This document shows, in pieces, positions 6,101-54,456 of a stretch of DNA of 64,000 bases. The stretch's first letter is position 1. Each line of letters begins with the position of its first letter. The DNA lies in contig OZ176053.1 of the NCBI GenBank assembly GCA_964247055.1, forward strand, positions 8,990,001 to 9,054,000, written 5' to 3'. This DNA comes from Paragordius varius. Lineage: Eukaryota; Animalia; Nematomorpha. The notes beneath the pieces were generated by a model. The model was not told the origin of the DNA, searched no databases, and worked only from the letters and a program-made list of their open reading frames with translations. The position numbers and the translations under genes were made by a program.

Positions 6101-8016
6101 TCAATAATCAGATTATTTTTGTTATTTTTTTATACAATAAATTCTTAAACGTAAGGATAATATGTAGAGTGTCTGTTCAAAAAATGGCTCTTTCACAGTA
6201 AAAGACGCCCTTTATTATTTCTATATATAACCAATATAATTAGTGTTTTTCATACGGGTTTATGGATTTAGAATTCCTTAACCCCATACTCTAAGATTCC
6301 GAATAATACGTAAAAAGAACGTTGAGTGTATTGAAACTCCGAAAATTAAACTTAGTTTTTACCTTTTATATTGCCTTATTTGTTTTTAATTTAATTCTAA
6401 AATAAAATGAGGGTATATTAATCAAATTTTATTATAATGATTTTCGTTTGTGATATTTTCCCTTAAGTTTTAACCAGTTTTGATGTATAATTTAGGAAAA
6501 ACCATATGTACTCATGCACCCAACTTCAACTCTAACCTATGAACCAGACCTATTTTTAGCAAGATCAAAATGGTCCAACACAATACTCCTCTCATTTTCA
6601 ACCCTGTTAGAAACATCATCTACGAAACCATATTTAATTAATACATTTACTTTGGTTGATCCTTTACCACAGCTTTTATTGCAATGTGGTTGCATAACAT
6701 TAGCTATTAAACAGTAAGAATATCTCTATATATTTTAGCTCATAATTTTTAAGGAACATTAATAATATTTTTATGGCTATTCTCTTTATATCAAATTTAT
6801 TTGTTTCTTAAACCATTGTTTATGGAACTTTCTACTTTAACCTGGATGTCTAAATATGAAATATGTCAAATTATTCTATTATTTCATAATATGATTGTTA
6901 TTTCATAATATGATTGTTTAGAAACGATTCATTAGCTTATGTCATAGATATTTTGTTTGACAATTGGTTATCCTTAACTTTGACACTTAATGATTTGCAA
7001 CAAGTATTTGAAAGTATGGAAAATATAGTAAAAGCTCTGGCCATACGCTATATGGTAGATTGTATTCGCTGGAAAAAGCTCTCAAAATTAAAAAAGATTT
7101 CACTTTCCGAAGAAACCGCTCAAGGTATTATTTATTCGTAAAAATTGCTTTTATAAAATAATATGTATATTACGGGTTGAAATAATTTATATAATAATTT
7201 ATATGGGTTAACATATTTTTCAAAATATTTCAATAATGCCTAGATAATGAAACACAAATCATGAGAAAAACGATTGATGATTTGCCCATTAATATTGATA
7301 AAATTACTAAACTAATTTCAAATTTTTTGACCAGAACTGAATCTAGCGCATTGGCTTCCATTTACACTTTAAAAAAGATTGGAGGTTACACATTTCGTCC
7401 AACCAATACACGCGTATTCATTGAAGAACAATTGGAAAATTCGCATAATGTATCGTTAAATAAAGAACATAAAAAAGATTATCATCAAATGTTCACAAAA
7501 CTAATTTTACAACAAAATAGAGGAGAAAAGGACACATTGATAATGAAAAAAAATGAAATTCACCAGGGTAATATAGACAAATGTATGACTCAATTATTCC
7601 CCTATTTTACAGCTCAAGATTTGTCATTCATTAATCATTTACAAATGGAAGATTTGGATACCTTTAAACAAATGACATGTAATATATGTCACAAGACAAT
7701 TTTAAACTGTTCATTTACTGACTCATTAACAACACCTGAGCGCTTAAAAGAAAATGTAATATTGGCAAATATTTATAAACTCTTTTTGTTGCATCAAATC
7801 GGTTGTTACATAAAAAATATATGCGAATTATCAGAGATATCATTTAAACCACGCGAATCAAATTCTCCTATTCCAATTGATAAACCACTAGATCATGAAT
7901 TGGAAACTGAAGACTTGGATGAAGATATGAAATATTTTTGCCCTATTTGTTCAGCCGATATTAAAATTAAGACGAAAATGGATATTTTACGTCATAAACG
8001 ATCTCATCAACCATAA
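174..8016 (+). CDS. DHX34: DEAH-box RNA helicase DHX34 (NMD factor), 5'-partial. Exons 174-327, 502-628, 3329-3628, 4046-4217, 4677-4825, 5211-5448, 5731-5880, 5949-6089, 6496-6713, 6922-7124, 7244-8016
   Basis: Motif [22 protein letters not shown]; HA2 region FPFIEPP...[15 protein letters not shown]; [14 protein letters not shown]; [16 protein letters not shown]; [13 protein letters not shown]; C-terminal CPIC...DILRHKRSH. All 10 introns are GT-AG with consistent phases. Confidence 0.93.
802..1830 (+). mobile_element. Non-autonomous Helitron-like element with an internal tandem duplication (~460-490 bp units), in DHX34 intron 2; 3' end unclear
   Basis: Starts A|TCTATATATTTATAAAAATGG, the same 5' end as the copies at 1926 and 53126. 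Core (ccggtagacc...ccccgacaatagcttcgcc...ccaccccgtgt) occurs twice, each followed by gatgatagctgctgggtaaggagctacc. Confidence 0.7.
1926..2433 (+). mobile_element. Non-autonomous Helitron copy lacking the 3' hairpin
   Basis: A|TC 5' end and CTAG|T 3' end; collinear with the 52580-53126 copy, but the hairpin segment before CTAG is missing. Confidence 0.75.
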
Positions 8017-11099: not shown

Positions 11100-13576
11100 A
11101 TGCTGAGTCCACTTGAGGAGGTTAATTTGGATTTATCAAATTTATACGAAGATCAGTTGCAACTATTAAATTGTATCCCATTAATAAATAAAAAAAATTT
11201 AATACTTCAAAGTTTAGGACATCCAAATCTTTTACCACATATCGATATTTATACAAAATCAATATTTTCTATATCAATTATACAACCTCTTTTTTGTAAA
11301 AAGTTATATAAAACCTTATCGGAAAAACAAAAAATCGTTCCTACCATTGTGAAATCAATTTTGAGTGCTAAATTATATTTACAACTCGCAAACATTCCTT
11401 TTTTTTATTTTTGTGAAAGCGATATATTCATAAACGAATATGATATAAAACTCAAAAATTATTCCTTATATTATTTAATGGATTGTATCGCGATGAAAAA
11501 TCCGTCTGATGATATAAGATTTATTTCTCCCGATTATTTTTTTAATCCCACTAATGCAATCATTAATCCATGCATTATCACTTGGTCCTTAGCGGTATAC
11601 TTATTTGAATTTCTTTTTGATGTAAAGATATGGTCAAAATTGTCCTATAAACAAAAACTATTTAAATTATTATCGTATGGGAAAGGTAATGCAACCGATG
11701 TTTTCCAATCATTAAAAGATGAACACAATATTGACCCTCAGTTATTTGCCAATCAGATTGATAGAAAAATTTCTGAATTCATGGAATACTGTTTCAACCC
11801 TATATCAGTGACTAAAGATTGGGATTTTATATATAATTATTTTTCTTTTCCTGAGACTAACATAAAAATTGAAAATAAGGATAGCGTTCTATTTCCATTC
11901 GAAACAAATTATTTAATAAAAATTGTGAACAAAAATCTCAAAAGTTTTTCGAAAGGAAAAATTGAAAATGATCATAGCTATTTCCCCATCTTAAATGTTC
12001 CATCACTTTTACCTAATAAAAAAATTAGTGAAGAAAATAATGGATTCGAAAAAGCACATGGCTATAAAAAAACTAATAAATTTAAGTCAAAAATTATAAA
12101 ATATACTAGACAGCCATTAGATATGTCCTATCTTACTGAAAAACTATTTAGCTGTCACATGGATGACAAAATATTTGAAGATGAAGTATATACAATAAAA
12201 TCCGAAAATTTTAAAGAAACCGAACAATATTTAGCAACTGAATCAAGATGCGGTCAAAATTCGGTTTTTTATGTCGATTCAACATTACTTAATCACAAAT
12301 ACAAAAAAACCATTCCAACAATTAATTTAGATATAAAAGAGAATGATGTATGTTATCAATATAAACGTTTAAAAACCTTTCGTACAATTTTGGATAAATG
12401 TCCATACCAATTAAGCCTGTTAAAAGAGGCGGCAATGCGTGATATATGTCCTTTTTATCGTAATGAAATTTGGGCATGTTTGTTGGATGTTGGAACATGT
12501 TCTGAACTCTATAATCGAATAGACATATCTCAATATCTTGACATTGAACGACAAGTATACTTAAGTTTTTTAGACTTTATTAAATATATAAATGTGTACA
12601 TGTTCAATACAAACTTTCAAATAATTTAAAATTTACAAATAAGACTATTATTTGTGAATATTTGTAGTAAACAAACTATTTTTTTGAAGTATCGGTTGAA
12701 TTTTAATTATCACCTCTTCTCTTATATTAGACAAAAAACTTAGAATTTTTACACTCAATTTCTAGAGTCCCAATTTCAGATAACTCCAAAACACGATTGA
12801 AACGAAGAGCTAATATTACACTATGCGGCAAAAATGGGGATCAAAAAATAAAGGATACAGTCATGTATCCTTCATTTTATCAAAAATTTAATTTTTGCCG
12901 TTAAATGGGTATAAATATTTGGCAAAGAATGGAAAAAAGAGCTCTATGGTATTAACAATATCAATTCATCAAAAAAGTATAAGAATTACCATAGAGTTTT
13001 TGTTTTTTCTATACCAAATATTTATACCCATTTAACGAAAAAAAAATTTTTTTGATAAAATAAAGGATACATGACTGTATATATCATTCGATAGTAAAAT
13101 TTCAGGATAATGAATATTGAAATGATGTATGCGGTTAAAATACTAGAAAAAAAAGTTATTTTAAATTTTCTATTATTAGCCAAAAACGAAAAATCGCATT
13201 TTTTTCGCATGTCAAATAAAATTACATACAATACACGAAAACGTGTCAACTAAATGTCATTTGTTTTAATATAGTATAAGTATGATTCTAAACGCAAAAA
13301 TTATCTACAGATTTTACATTTCGGACGGTCCCAGAAATATATTTAAGGATATTAGCTAAAAAACGCACTTATCGTCAAATTTGAATCAAAAACTTATTAA
13401 TATGCGGTAAAAAATCTTAATTTTTATTAAAACAATATATTAACTCTATATATATATATATATATAAATTACACAATATATCGTTTTCAAAAAAATTAAA
13501 CCTTATATAAAAAAATAAATTTTTCGAAAATTTCCAACAAAGCTGAAGCTGCGTATAATTTTTACAAAGCATCCAT

Positions 13577-47972: not shown

Positions 47973-48752
47973 ATGTATAGCACTCGGTTTTTAAGGCCTA
48001 TTGTAATCAAGAGTATTTCTTTTTATTCCACAAAAACACCGATTAATATATCATATATTCACCATTCAAACAATTATTTTTTAGTCCCTCACAAGGCATT
48101 ATTTTATATAAGTTATGTAAATTTTTCCGATTTATCCAATAAATCCATTCCGCCCAAAAAAGATGAAGATCTTCTTAATCGAGATGAAAATGATAAGTCA
48201 CTATCCTTATGGATGCGATTTAAAATAATGATGAAAAAATACTGGTATGTTTTAGTACCAGTTCATTTTGTTACCACTGTTATATGGTTAACGTCCTTTT
48301 GGTACGCTGCTAAATGGTAAGTTTATCTTTAATTTATTTACAAAACTTTACGATTAATTTAAACTTTTTACCATTTAGCGGGCTTGATGTTGTACCTTTG
48401 TTTGAAAAGTTGGGAATGCCCGATAAGTTTATTGAACCGCTCAAAAAATCGGGAGCTACCTATTTTGCAACCGCTTATGCCCTTTACAAACTTATATCTC
48501 CCATACGATATGCCATAACTATAGGATGTATAATAAAAAAAATTTTATTTAATATTTTTTATATCCCAAATTACATTTTATTTTTATTTGTAATTAGTAA
48601 CGACATTATCGATAAGATATCTTACAAGATGGGGATATATTAAACCCGTTCCGTCCAAAGAACAAATCAAAAAATTTGTCCATAGTTTGCGAGAAGAAAG
48701 ACTAAGAAAACGAAATACTAATTCTATAGTCAAAAATAAAAAACGTAGCTGA
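47973..48752 (+). CDS. FAM210A: FAM210A-like mitochondrial protein (DUF1279), 215 aa. Exons 47973-48316, 48379-48527, 48598-48752
   Basis: Presequence-like N-terminus; RFKIMMKKYWYVLVPVHFVT; GLDVVPLFEKLG; AYALYKLISPIRY; RYLTRWGYIKP. Confidence 0.88.
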
Positions 48753-51886: not shown

Positions 51887-52530
51887 TCACAAACAATCAG
51901 TAATTAGATGAAAATTTGTGTGCGCTTTAGCATTATTGAGTTTAAGTAGTGAGCCAAGAACAGCATTTGAGCCCAATTCATAGGTGTGGGGAAATGACAT
52001 TCCTTGTTTCCTTTCATACATAACATGATGGACCTGTTCCCAACGAATGGGTTTAATTAATTGTTGACACAAAAGGCGTTTAGTATGGCTTGGTGAGGCG
52101 TGTTTATGCCCCGTCACAGATGAATACACTGGAATTATGGTAGGCTATTAAAAACATTATTATTATTATTATAATGATAATTATATAAATACAAAATAAA
52201 ATGAAAATCCAGTAAACAACATATAAAAGATTTAAATTTGAAAAAATTAATTCACACAAACAATTTTTTTATTGTAAAATTTGCTTATGCAAGTATATTA
52301 AATATAAATGTATATATGACCAAAGTCCTATTGCCAGCTCCCCGCGGTGTTGGCTGAGGCATGAAAATGCGCTAACGGCAAAGGCCAATTTCTAATGATA
52401 TGTAAATCATTAGTAGTAGACAAGGGCATGGTTACGTAAAAAATCTCCTCAGATTATTATGAAATATAAATATTATGAATATGATTTACTTCGTGGTACG
52501 AAAAGTCTGAATTTGGTGTCCTACCCTTTA

Positions 52531-52580
<50 letters not shown>

Positions 52581-54063
52581 TAGCGTAAATCTCGTGCTGC
52601 TAGGCAGCCCGAGGAAGTCCTTCGCACTTATGGGGGGGGGGGGGGGGAACTATTTGAAAAAAAGGAAAAATTTCGAAATATTATTTAATAGCTATGATCT
52701 CATAGGAATTTCAAAACGGTGCATTCATACTAATATATTGTTTACTTGGGCGAAAAATAAATTCAAAAAATTATTTTTGTGGATTTTGTTTTTTGATAAA
52801 AATGGCATTTTACGGGGGGAGCGGTAAAAAGAGGGCCTAAATTAAAAATGCGAGCCGACTATGTTCGGGAAAATAAGTAAACAAAAATCATATTTGAAAT
52901 TAAATGGTCCAACACTCCGGAAAATTGTCTCAAAGACACGATTTTTGTGGACTTCTGTTTAAACCCGTTTTTTGCACGGGGTGGGTCCGAACTGGGGGCC
53001 TAATTCAAAAGAAGGGCAAAGCTATTGTCGGGGCATTCATTAATAATTATAATTTTTCAATGGGTCTACCGGTTTTCTGGAAACAGATCACAAAGCCAGC
53101 ATTTTCCATTTTTATAAATATATAGATAATAAATAATTTGGAATAATAACCTTAATGTTGATTTTTTCAAGTTCTTTTTGAAATGCGCTAACCAGAGGCT
53201 TAAGAAACACTGAATTGTTGGCATAATTAATAGGGACACAGGTACAAGATCGTATGTTATAGTTGCGAAAATTATTTTGAATATATTCAAGCGCCTAATT
53301 AATTAACACAAAATTTTTACTTTATTATGACCAGATAATAATTTAGCCTCGGGATATAGATAGGATGAAATTGAACAAAAAGCGTTTTCAATCCCTTGTT
53401 GCATAGCAAATTTTTTTGCGTCGCTAATCATTTCACCTAATCTAAAAAGATTAAGTTTGTCCAAAGCATGTTATAAGTTGTGAATAATAATATTTAAATA
53501 TAGTTTACTTTGTACTTGGGTGTGTGCGGATTGACAACATACTTGTATTCGGATTTTCGTTAATAAGATCCTGAATAAATTTTCCCCGTAACAACAAGAG
53601 ATTAACTGTATCCTCCAAAGATATTGATTCGGTAAAAACTAGAGCGGCATACTCACCCACATTAATGCCGGAACATCCCACGCAATTTTCGACAATCTAA
53701 ATTTATGTCATAACTTACAGAAGGACAATGTAATGAGATTTCCTCAATGTAAAATAATTGTTGAATCAAATGGTTTATATGTTCTGATGCCAATGATTTG
53801 GTTTTGAATATATCATATCCCAAATGAGAATTTATGCGATTATAAAGAGAATATTTAGAATTTTTTGAATTGACAAAATTTGGGTTAGGTGACGTAAAAT
53901 CAGGAAACAAAAGAAGTGTCGTTTGTTCTGGATCAACATTTGGTCTAAAACAATGGGAATACTGATACTGACTTGTTGGTTTTTCGTTTCGAGGAATACA
54001 TGTTTGTAATTGTTCTGGTAATGAGGCATATTTGCGGTGCAATATTTTTAAATACCTGTGCAT
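51887..54063 (-). CDS. MCAT: Mitochondrial malonyl-CoA:ACP transacylase homologue lacking the catalytic Ser and His, ~351 aa. Exons 54063-53719, 53696-53509, 53441-53321, 53294-53151, 52144-51887 (alternative upstream ATGs at 54090 and 54114)
   Basis: LLLFP, HLGYDIF, IVENCVGCSGINVGEYAALVF, GIENAFCSISSYLYPEAKLLSGHNKALEYIQ and QQLIKPIRWEQVHHVMYERKQGMSFPHTYELG are collinear with metazoan MCAT. The N-terminus MHRYLKILHRKYAS resembles a mitochondrial presequence. Confidence 0.9.
52580..53126 (-). mobile_element. Complete 547-bp non-autonomous Helitron in MCAT intron 4
   Basis: Minus strand: A|TCTATATATTTATAAAAATGG 5' end; GC-rich hairpin CTCGGGCTGC-CTA-GCAGCACGAG 7 nt before the terminal CTAG|T; inserted between A and T with no TSD. 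Confidence 0.85.
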
Positions 54064-54456
54064 GATCCAAAGAGAAAAATGTGACATATGATTTTTTTCC
54101 ACATAAAATATCATATAATACAGTGTCAGAAAAAAATATATCGTGATAAAAAAATATATTTTTATAGATAAATGTCAAATTCTGGATGGCTCCCCACCTC
54201 TGATATATAAACTTCCTACCACTTTTATTGCTATTGTTCCATATCAGAAAATTGGAAAAATGACGAAAATATCGTTTACCTTTGGGTACAACACATTGAT
54301 TTCAATCCTTCGTTTTAAATTAAGGTAACTAGTAACCCCAGGCCCAAAAATATAAATATATCAATATGAAATTAATTGATATTATGGCAAAAGTTTGCAC
54401 ATTATATTACATTGATGCATAGTAATATAAAAAAATAAATTCAAAATATTTGGTAC

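Follow-up and report, generated by a model that had tools for sequence, protein, structure and literature searches.

Seeing a homologue of the malonyl-CoA:ACP transacylases (EC 2.3.1.39) FabD and mitochondrial MCAT in the hairworm Paragordius varius whose catalytic motifs read as something else, we asked whether such a gene still encodes an enzyme, is a decaying copy of one, or has been kept for another job. The window evaluated here is a stretch of 64,000 nucleotides of contig OZ176053.1 (assembly GCA_964247055.1, positions 8,990,001 to 9,054,000), and all coordinates below are counted from its first letter.

Gene structure and orthology

The gene lies on the minus strand (54063-51887) and comprises five exons and four introns, all of the latter GT..AG. 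Its spliced frame of 1056 nt (351 codons plus TGA) holds no internal stop, and the gene model holds no frameshift or broken splice site. An initial annotation, made from the letters of the sequence, had described an intact spliced frame with canonical introns and a conserved C-terminus, and this description stands; the codon coordinates it gave for the two replaced catalytic residues were exact (Asn127 and Asn245 in the list).

Exon 1, 53719..54063, minus strand: residues 1-115, a basic N-terminus followed by a degenerate GQGSQ motif (PDFTSP, residues 54-59, 53904-53887)
Intron 1, 53697..53718, minus strand: 22 nt, GTAAGT..TTTAG
Exon 2, 53509..53696, minus strand: residues 116-178, the GINVG elbow with Asn127 (AAT 53663-53661) and Arg152 (CGG 53588-53586, in LLLRG)
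Intron 2, 53442..53508, minus strand: 67 nt, GTAAAC..TTTAG, phase 2
Exon 3, 53321..53441, minus strand: residues 178-218, a small-subdomain segment that matches human MCAT residues 210-242
Intron 3, 53295..53320, minus strand: 26 nt, GTAAAA..ATTAG, phase 0
Exon 4, 53151..53294, minus strand: residues 219-266 (48 residues), with the His loop as PINYANN and Asn245 (AAT 53216-53214)
Intron 4, 52145..53150, minus strand: 1006 nt, GTTATT..AATAG, phase 0
Exon 5, 51887..52144, minus strand: residues 267-351 and the TGA stop (51889-51887), the best conserved part

Conservation is uneven along the protein. Exon 1 is its most diverged part and has lost about nine residues from the conserved 'CL.GP...L' loop, while exon 5 keeps the animal-MCAT motifs WEQ, Y.R, FP.TYE.G and L..N..A, including the equivalent of human Glu347. 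Were intron 1 left unspliced, the frame would end 19 codons further on. Additional in-frame ATGs upstream, at 54087 and 54114, leave the start uncertain by up to 17 codons; with this ambiguity of the start codon, the first 15 residues hold four K/R and no D/E, and a basic N-terminus of this kind does no more than suggest mitochondrial import. Intron 4 carries a very high-copy dispersed repeat (~52290-53130) whose summed contig depth runs into the thousands in four sequencing runs, together with an (AT)n tract (52533-52579) and a poly-C run.

The MCAT/FabD homology was confirmed at several levels. A profile built from 32 canonical animal MCATs aligns with the spliced protein at 250 bits over residues 26-347, the span over which this protein is also collinear with human MCAT (PDB 2C2N; chain 8 of 8CSP/8CSQ/8CSR/8CSS; 9H52), and blastp against arthropod and vertebrate MCATs gives about 1e-59. 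Exons 5, 2 and 3 each match human MCAT alone (2c2n / 8csp chain 8; E = 4e-20, 5e-5 and 1e-4, respectively), whereas exons 1 and 4, searched singly against the PDB, gave no match; a word search with exon 5, its candidates limited to proteins of 47-149 residues, likewise returned none. Scanned against PF00698 (gathering cut-off 32.7 bits), single window exons reached at most 14.8 bits, isoform X1 of the protein from another hairworm, Gordionus, reached 29.1 bits, and 66-70 bits were reached by the canonical Trichuris protein and by P0019. In the tree the window protein and its Gordionus counterpart form a clade within the animal MCATs (SH-aLRT 100), joined to the rest by a long stem, and the window tip, at 1.8, has four times the length of the Gordionus tip, at 0.42. 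Judged by profile match and tree position, the window gene is a true MCAT orthologue.

Active-site residues in two hairworms

Each motif reading of the initial annotation was upheld on alignment. The GxSxG motif reads GINVG, and Asn127 takes the place of the nucleophilic serine (human Ser153, FabD Ser92), on which it falls directly in the exon 2 match to human MCAT; PVSGAFH reads PINYANN, gapless collinearity and multiple alignment both placing Asn245 on the catalytic histidine (human His270, FabD His201); and PGQGSQ reads PDFTSP, with DFTSP on GQGSQ and Phe56 at the position of Gln11, the glutamine that serves the oxyanion hole and contacts the substrate, in multiple alignments. The malonyl-carboxylate-binding arginine of LLLRG was said to be kept, and it is: Arg152 lies on human Arg178 (FabD Arg117), also in the exon 2 match, and Gordionus keeps it too.

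Errors of assembly were considered as a source of the two Asn codons and are excluded, because other runs agree with the window and another species carries both replacements. Specifically, the Asn127 codon falls in a contig of run X6 (53627-53777) that is identical to the window, and for run X3, ~99% identical across the exons, no difference is listed at the Asn127 or the Asn245 codon.

That other species is Gordionus, whose RefSeq MCAT-like protein (XP_065316437.1, isoform X2; isoform X1 is P0112) was the only close relative found, at 39% identity; RefSeq labels it as an ordinary MCAT-like protein. The two hairworms have four replacements in common (S92N, H201N, Q63H and M121I in FabD numbering, the latter two being substrate-pocket residues), and the whole His loop is replaced in both by a similar PIN[FY]A.N sequence; their elbow sequences are CSGINVG (window) and TTGLNLG (Gordionus). 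Kept in both are the glycines of the nucleophile elbow, Arg117/178, Gln250 and the C-terminal motifs specific to animals. Gene structure agrees as well: intron positions on both sides of the 48-residue exon 4 are common to the two genes, and this exon matches exactly the 48 residues absent from Gordionus isoform X2, the gap starting at the position of intron 3. The first 60-70 residues are missing from the Gordionus RefSeq model, and the GQGSQ comparison accordingly covers the window protein alone.

Set against human MCAT, the window protein retains Arg178, the Glu347 equivalent and the C-terminal WEQ, Y.R and FP.T.E.G motifs, but differs in both catalytic residues, in Arg212 (Lys), in GQGSQ, in the His and Ile at the FabD Gln63 and Met121 equivalents, in the rebuilt His loop and in the nine-residue loop deletion. 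E. coli FabD (b1092) belongs to the same fold family and aligns with the window protein at Arg117, Gln250 and the G-x-x-x-G-E scaffold of the elbow, whereas Ser92, His201 and Gln11 are replaced and the C-terminal animal motifs that the hairworms keep are absent from FabD. The fold of the Gordionus orthologue is predicted to be intact as a two-subdomain acyltransferase, its structural model (pLDDT 95.6) superposing on 2c2n and 8csp chain 8 with TM 0.97 and rmsd 1.2-1.3 Å at 45% identity.

Because Gordionus shares the replacements and the MCATs of Trichuris, tardigrades and arthropods are canonical, as are those of molluscs and vertebrates, the dead site is, by this comparison, old and confined to hairworms among the taxa examined. 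Other MCAT-like proteins without the nucleophile were P0019, P0037, P0039, P0047 and P0073.

Proposed non-catalytic retention and its alternatives

What might a protein so altered be kept for? It was not until 2022 that human MCAT was seen on immature mitochondrial small subunits (PMC9892005), and it is now a structurally defined assembly factor of the small subunit (mtSSU, human states A-D; PMC9892005, also PMC13294482), as the initial annotation had stated. Together with METTL17 it sits on the head of the immature mtSSU, holds rRNA helix h31, blocks h42 and then leaves, upon which the head compacts (PMC9892005); whether MCAT disease mutations act via fatty-acid synthesis or via ribosome assembly is still debated (PMC9892005). 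The annotation had also named a trypanosome homologue, mt-SAF8. That name did not turn up in the literature examined, where the MCAT homologue on immature mitochondrial small subunits of Trypanosoma brucei is called mt-SAF36 (PMC8784144). Although it belongs to a different lineage and assembly pathway, mt-SAF36 sets, by analogy, a precedent outside mammals for the MCAT fold in ribosome assembly. A further parallel is yeast Rsm22, a METTL17 homologue that has lost SAM binding (PMC9892005) and so is an assembly factor keeping an enzyme fold without its cofactor site, as proposed here for MCAT, albeit in an unrelated (methyltransferase) fold.

We interpret the hairworm protein as probably retained for a non-enzymatic job such as building the mitochondrial ribosome, and the full account towards which we lean, with modest confidence, is that its chemistry was lost before the split from Gordionus, that selection has kept it as a folded, non-catalytic protein, and that its likeliest job is in mtSSU assembly. 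Loss of acyl-transfer chemistry would have preceded the divergence of the two species; with no nucleophile a malonyl-enzyme intermediate would be impossible, and malonate would therefore not be loaded onto ACP. Selection would then maintain the folded MCAT without catalysis. By analogy with human MCAT, assembly of the mtSSU would be the most likely retained job: the hairworm protein would bind the mtSSU head with METTL17, hold h31 and block h42, and depart to allow the head to compact. Charge and pI, evaluated as a hint of RNA binding, placed both hairworm proteins inside the canonical MCAT range.

A non-catalytic MCAT could also have been retained for something else: it might bind or sense malonyl-CoA, acyl-ACP or ACP, or it might scaffold the machinery of mitochondrial fatty-acid synthesis and lipoylation. 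The kept Arg117/178 and Gln250 would, on this reading, still hold a carboxylate ligand, and their retention in both hairworms despite a rebuilt pocket speaks for it, as does the predicted intact fold of the Gordionus model. Against it, the lining of the pocket has changed throughout (Gln11, Gln63, Met121, the 'GP..L..T..QP' segment and the His loop), retention of the Arg and Gln may be structural, and the literature examined documents no such role for any MCAT; we regard both the ligand-holding pocket and the wider reading as unlikely, if the strongest of the alternatives.

Somewhat less likely still is that an active, canonical MCAT resides elsewhere in the genome and that the copy in the window is a duplicate that has diverged and may either specialise or drift. 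Our reading of the genome spans 64 kb, which leaves room for a second MCAT, but among 49 MCAT matches from many animals the Gordionus query returned no second canonical Gordionus MCAT, only the two isoforms of one gene, and the hairworm clade sits among single-copy animal MCATs. A second copy would in any case be compatible with non-catalytic retention of the copy in the window.

We also weighed the possibility that the window gene is a pseudogene that has yet to acquire a stop, with function persisting only in Gordionus. The very long tip branch, the deletion in exon 1 and the loss of 11 more highly conserved residues than in Gordionus all speak for it, as does a lack of RNA support: words of the gene were absent from every listed run recorded as possibly RNA, and a library of 1.8 billion proteins contained no transcript-derived protein of this species. 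Because of that tip branch and those 11 extra losses, constraint on this lineage is best described as weak.

Weak constraint differs from none, and several tests argue against decay. At the stop-codon density of the window, 351 codons would stay open by chance with a probability of about 4e-12; under random substitution the frame is lost after ~5% change, being retained in 4% of cases at 5% change and in 0.25% at 9%, and all four introns keep their GT..AG boundaries. At columns in which Gordionus has the canonical consensus residue, the window protein agrees in 36% of the weakly conserved but 66% of the strongly conserved ones, so that retention tracks conservation (Fisher p = 0.003; trend p = 0.002). 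Among the 62 columns conserved at 90% or more, 20 are changed in both hairworms, clustered at FabD positions 44-72, 92, 121 and 195-207, and 29 are kept in both, mostly towards the C-terminus.

Comparison between two samples points the same way. The window and run X3 differ at 4 of 1030 nt in the gene and at 5 of 145 nt upstream, making the gene about nine times less diverged than its upstream flank, and the single indel is a 3-nt gap in frame. The species behind runs X3, X6, X7 and X8 is the window's own or one nearly identical to it; X3 covers the exons and the others offer pieces only, X6-X8 having been recruited mainly via the high-copy repeat of intron 4. A 509-residue ORF at 11100-12626, sought as a calibrator of species divergence, found no match. 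The pseudogene alternative that the initial annotation had raised thus fails on both the open frame and the rejected neutral model, and by these sequence comparisons the window MCAT is not a decaying pseudogene; we consider decay masked by a still-open frame improbable.

Least credible of all is that the protein remains an enzyme, relying on another nucleophile or catalysing an altered reaction, as nothing direct favours it beyond the kept fold and Arg, no Ser, Cys or Thr common to both elbows (CSGINVG vs TTGLNLG) replaces the nucleophile, and the general base and oxyanion-hole Gln are gone as well.

Implications of a retained MCAT without its dyad

Our literature search for a naturally nucleophile-less MCAT found no description of one. 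Long retention of such a protein in an animal lineage would constitute natural evidence for a selected, non-catalytic function of MCAT, and it would expose which residues such a function needs, here the animal-specific C-terminal motifs, which are kept when the pocket is not.

A bolder proposal, which we offer tentatively and consider possible though doubtful, is that the only MCAT of hairworms is now a dedicated mtSSU assembly factor, in a role that would be independent of catalysis and older than the split between ecdysozoans and vertebrates, with malonyl-ACP lost or rerouted. Hairworm adults are non-feeding, and lipoyl synthesis by LIAS needs octanoyl-ACP and with it some source of malonyl-ACP. 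If the proposal is true, hairworms would provide a natural separation-of-function mutant of MCAT, and the malonyl-ACP on which mitochondrial fatty-acid and lipoate synthesis draw would either have been lost, the cofactors then coming from the host, or be made by an unrecognised route. Should the only MCAT indeed be dead, the sources of malonyl-ACP, octanoyl-ACP and lipoate, and the acylation of ACP for LYRM proteins, would all come into question in these animals.

An MCAT gene with an altered active site

Once spliced, the five exons of the MCAT gene give an open frame of 1056 nt (351 codons and a TGA stop), in a window with a G+C content of 27%. The initial annotation had described an intact spliced frame with canonical introns, and this description stands: its coordinates are all exact, and each of the four introns has GT..AG ends.

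Exons of the MCAT gene, each part of the spliced open frame
54063-53719, minus strand, exon 1
53696-53509, minus strand, exon 2
53441-53321, minus strand, exon 3
53294-53151, minus strand, exon 4
52144-51887, minus strand, exon 5

The introns measure 22, 67, 26 and 1006 nt, such that two (22 and 26 nt) are micro-introns, and reading through unspliced intron 1 meets a stop after 19 codons. With stop codons at the density seen in this window, a run of 351 open codons would arise by chance with a probability of ~4e-12. Upstream in-frame ATGs at 54087 and 54114 leave the start uncertain by up to 17 codons, and a protein beginning at 54063 or at 54087 has a basic N-terminus, with at least 16 positions free of acidic residues, a composition predicted to be presequence-like. 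Intron 4 carries a dispersed repeat (52290-53130) with a poly-C run and an (AT)n tract (52533-52579) at its flanks. The repeat occurs once within the 64-kb window and reaches summed contig depths in the thousands in all four sequencing runs compared; this high-copy repeat is mainly why runs X6-X8 matched the MCAT region. Other open frames on the plus strand include one at 7261-8016 ending in a DHX34-like C2H2 zinc finger (PF24485, 32 bits) and a 509-aa frame at 11100-12629 with no Pfam match and no relative in a 5.8-billion-protein word search, whose end resembles the start of a TBC/Rab-GAP domain, suggesting that the frame may belong to a TBCK-like gene as one large exon. A third, at 47973-48320, holds the start of a FAM210A/B domain (PF06916, 30 bits), and may mark a mitochondrial FAM210-like gene ~4 kb away from MCAT.

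Searched singly against the PDB, exons 5, 2 and 3 each retrieved human MCAT (E = 4e-20, 5e-5 and 1e-4, respectively), as crystal structure 2C2N and as chain 8 of the small-subunit assembly intermediates 8CSP-8CSS and 9H52, with no match for exons 1 and 4. The spliced protein scored 250 bits (residues 26-347) against a profile of 32 canonical animal MCATs and matched spider, insect and reptile MCATs by blastp (E near 1e-59, 28-34% identity); with its branching inside animal MCATs, this upholds the proposed MCAT/FabD homology.

Active-site positions (human MCAT/FabD numbering) in the window protein and in isoform X1 of the Gordionus MCAT-like protein
Nucleophile Ser153/Ser92: window Asn127 (AAT 53663-53661), GINVG; Gordionus Asn, GLNLG
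Catalytic His270/His201: window Asn245 (AAT 53216-53214), PINYANN; Gordionus Asn, PINFALN
Arg178/Arg117: window Arg152, kept; Gordionus kept
GQGSQ with Gln11: window DFTSP, Phe56 at the Gln position; Gordionus N-terminus missing from the model
FabD Gln63: His in both
FabD Met121: Ile in both
FabD Gln250: kept in both

Alignment to human MCAT and FabD bears out that both members of the Ser-His dyad are replaced, by Asn in each case and likewise in Gordionus. Asn245 of the window protein is placed on His270 by exon 4, which covers human residues 244-291 gap-free. The reported loss of GQGSQ and retention of the malonyl-binding Arg, aligned with human Arg178, were also recovered. Gln11, Gln63 and Gln250 are residues with known roles in FabD. 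Human Arg212 is Lys in the window protein, and the equivalent of Glu347, mutated in an LHON-like neuropathy (PMC9892005), is kept.

Five more MCAT-like proteins from public libraries lack the nucleophilic Ser (P0019, P0037 with members P0158 and P0159, P0039, P0047 and P0073; reference loci L002-L006), with elbows reading GYNVG, GYGVG, GYGLG, GYDVG and GYDVG. All five keep His201 and Arg117, and two have also lost GQGSQ. Three derive from transcript-sized Logan contigs (one found in 14 contigs of the ERR3510663-81 run series), a fourth lies on a JGI contig, and the fifth is encoded by a gene lacking introns, on an ENA contig of 22 kb; P0019 sits weakly beside tardigrade MCAT in our tree. Nucleophile loss in MCAT may be recurrent in eukaryotes.

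The same changes in a second hairworm

When 1.8 billion representative proteins were searched exhaustively with exon 5 as query, a single match stood out, from Gordionus (58% identity), and a word search with the Gordionus query returned isoform X1 (P0112, 283 aa) among 49 MCAT matches, which held no Gordionus protein besides its isoforms and no second Gordionus MCAT. Only 39% identical overall, the window protein and Gordionus X1 have in common the changes Ser-to-Asn, His-to-Asn, Gln63-to-His and Met121-to-Ile. Gordionus RefSeq isoform X2 lacks 48 residues that correspond exactly to window exon 4, the former catalytic-His exon, so both flanking intron positions are common to the two genes. 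Gordionus annotated models start ~60-70 residues downstream of the canonical MCAT and window-protein starts, and their N-terminus is probably under-annotated.

A maximum-likelihood tree paired the two proteins inside animal MCATs (SH-aLRT 100, stem 1.02 changes/site), with long branches and odd composition flagged for both, and the pairing follows also from their shared derived residues and introns. Canonical residues occupy these positions in MCATs of Trichuris (the one cleanly readable nematode sequence, in which the hairworm loss is absent), the tardigrade Paramacrobiotus, insects, spider, millipede, mollusc, flatworm, amphioxus, crinoid and vertebrates. On this sampling, the dead site arose in the stem lineage of hairworms or, at the latest, before Paragordius and Gordionus diverged. 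Trichinella murrelli P0065 (KRX43616.1) has a hydrophobic insertion directly after the nucleophile elbow that displaces the Arg117 column; this resembles intron sequence kept in the annotated model more than a genuine Arg loss.

Judged from an AlphaFold2 model of Gordionus X1 built with 54 homologues (mean pLDDT 95.6), the MCAT fold is predicted to be intact, as the top Foldseek matches were 2C2N and 8CSP chain 8 (TM 0.97, rmsd 1.2-1.3 A, 45% identity), ahead of bacterial FabDs. Against Pfam PF00698 the same protein scored 29.1 bits, short of the 32.7-bit cut-off and of the 66-70 bits reached by canonical proteins, such that the family signature appears eroded while the modelled fold persists.

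Selection, decay and assembly error

Pseudogene decay is rejected on frame survival in simulations and on retention that tracks conservation. Under simulated AT-biased substitution the frame survived in 4% of runs after 50 changes (5% of sites) and in 0.25% after 100, and window-Gordionus divergence far exceeds the simulated 5%. Among columns where Gordionus matches the canonical consensus, the window protein retains the residue at 17 of 47 positions of weak conservation (36%) and at 39 of 59 of strong conservation (66%; Fisher p = 0.003, trend p = 0.002), and neutral drift is disfavoured because a drifting copy would lack this dependence. Among 62 columns at least 90% conserved in canonical MCATs, 20 are changed in both hairworms, clustering at FabD 44-72, 92, 121 and 195-207, the positions of the substrate gorge and His loop. 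Both hairworms keep 29 of the 62, including Glu and the glycines of the elbow, Arg117, Gln250 and almost all of the C-terminal third, in keeping with the conserved C-terminus first noted, and there the kept residues include animal-conserved ones absent from FabD (WEQ, Y.R, P.T, L..N).

Run X3, from a separate study under a separate organism label, differs from the window at 4 positions over ~1030 nt of the gene versus 5 in the 145 nt just upstream (p = 0.002, on small numbers), with the lone exon 1 gap being 3 nt, and may give a weak indication of recent constraint. Against strong constraint stand the window protein's tip branch (1.8 versus 0.42 for Gordionus) and its loss, alone, of 11 further conserved residues and a 9-aa loop, mostly in exon 1. 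The MCAT gene was not found in any RNA-type run listed, nor was any transcript-derived P. varius protein among the 1.8 billion representative proteins. We read the gene as probably kept by selection rather than decaying.

Assembly error, for which the initial annotation had named reads with Ser or His codons as the sign, is rejected: run X3 (~99% identical over the exons, where its two listed differences are a synonymous change and a Ser-to-Gly change in exon 2) lists no difference at either Asn codon, a run X6 contig over 53627-53777 is identical to the window, and, more decisively, Ser-to-Asn and His-to-Asn also occur in Gordionus.

Possible role of a catalytically altered MCAT

The window protein is without nucleophile, general base and Gln11, and from these missing residues would be unable to load malonate onto ACP; an MCAT without the dyad is preserved in two deeply diverged hairworms. 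The hairworm protein is probably a pseudoenzyme, derived from MCAT. Human MCAT is, as first suggested, a bona fide mitochondrial small-subunit assembly factor (PMC9892005; confirmed in PMC13294482 and PMC12003892), located on the small-subunit head with METTL17, where it sequesters h31 and blocks h42 (PMC9892005). The proposed trypanosome counterpart holds as mt-SAF36, an MCAT-fold factor on T. brucei assembly intermediates (PMC8784144), whereas the name originally given, mt-SAF8, was not found in the literature searched. Yeast Rsm22 is a close functional parallel, having kept its fold after losing SAM binding (PMC9892005), where hairworm MCAT has lost catalytic residues. By this analogy a hairworm role in small-subunit assembly would fit the residues kept, and we put it forward tentatively as a reading with nearly as much for it as against it.

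In the literature searched, no naturally occurring MCAT without its nucleophile is described, and the hairworm genome papers held nothing on MCAT. The main importance of the hairworm protein would be as a natural separation-of-function case for MCAT in mitoribosome assembly, and it would also point to a rewiring of fatty-acid and lipoate metabolism in hairworm mitochondria.
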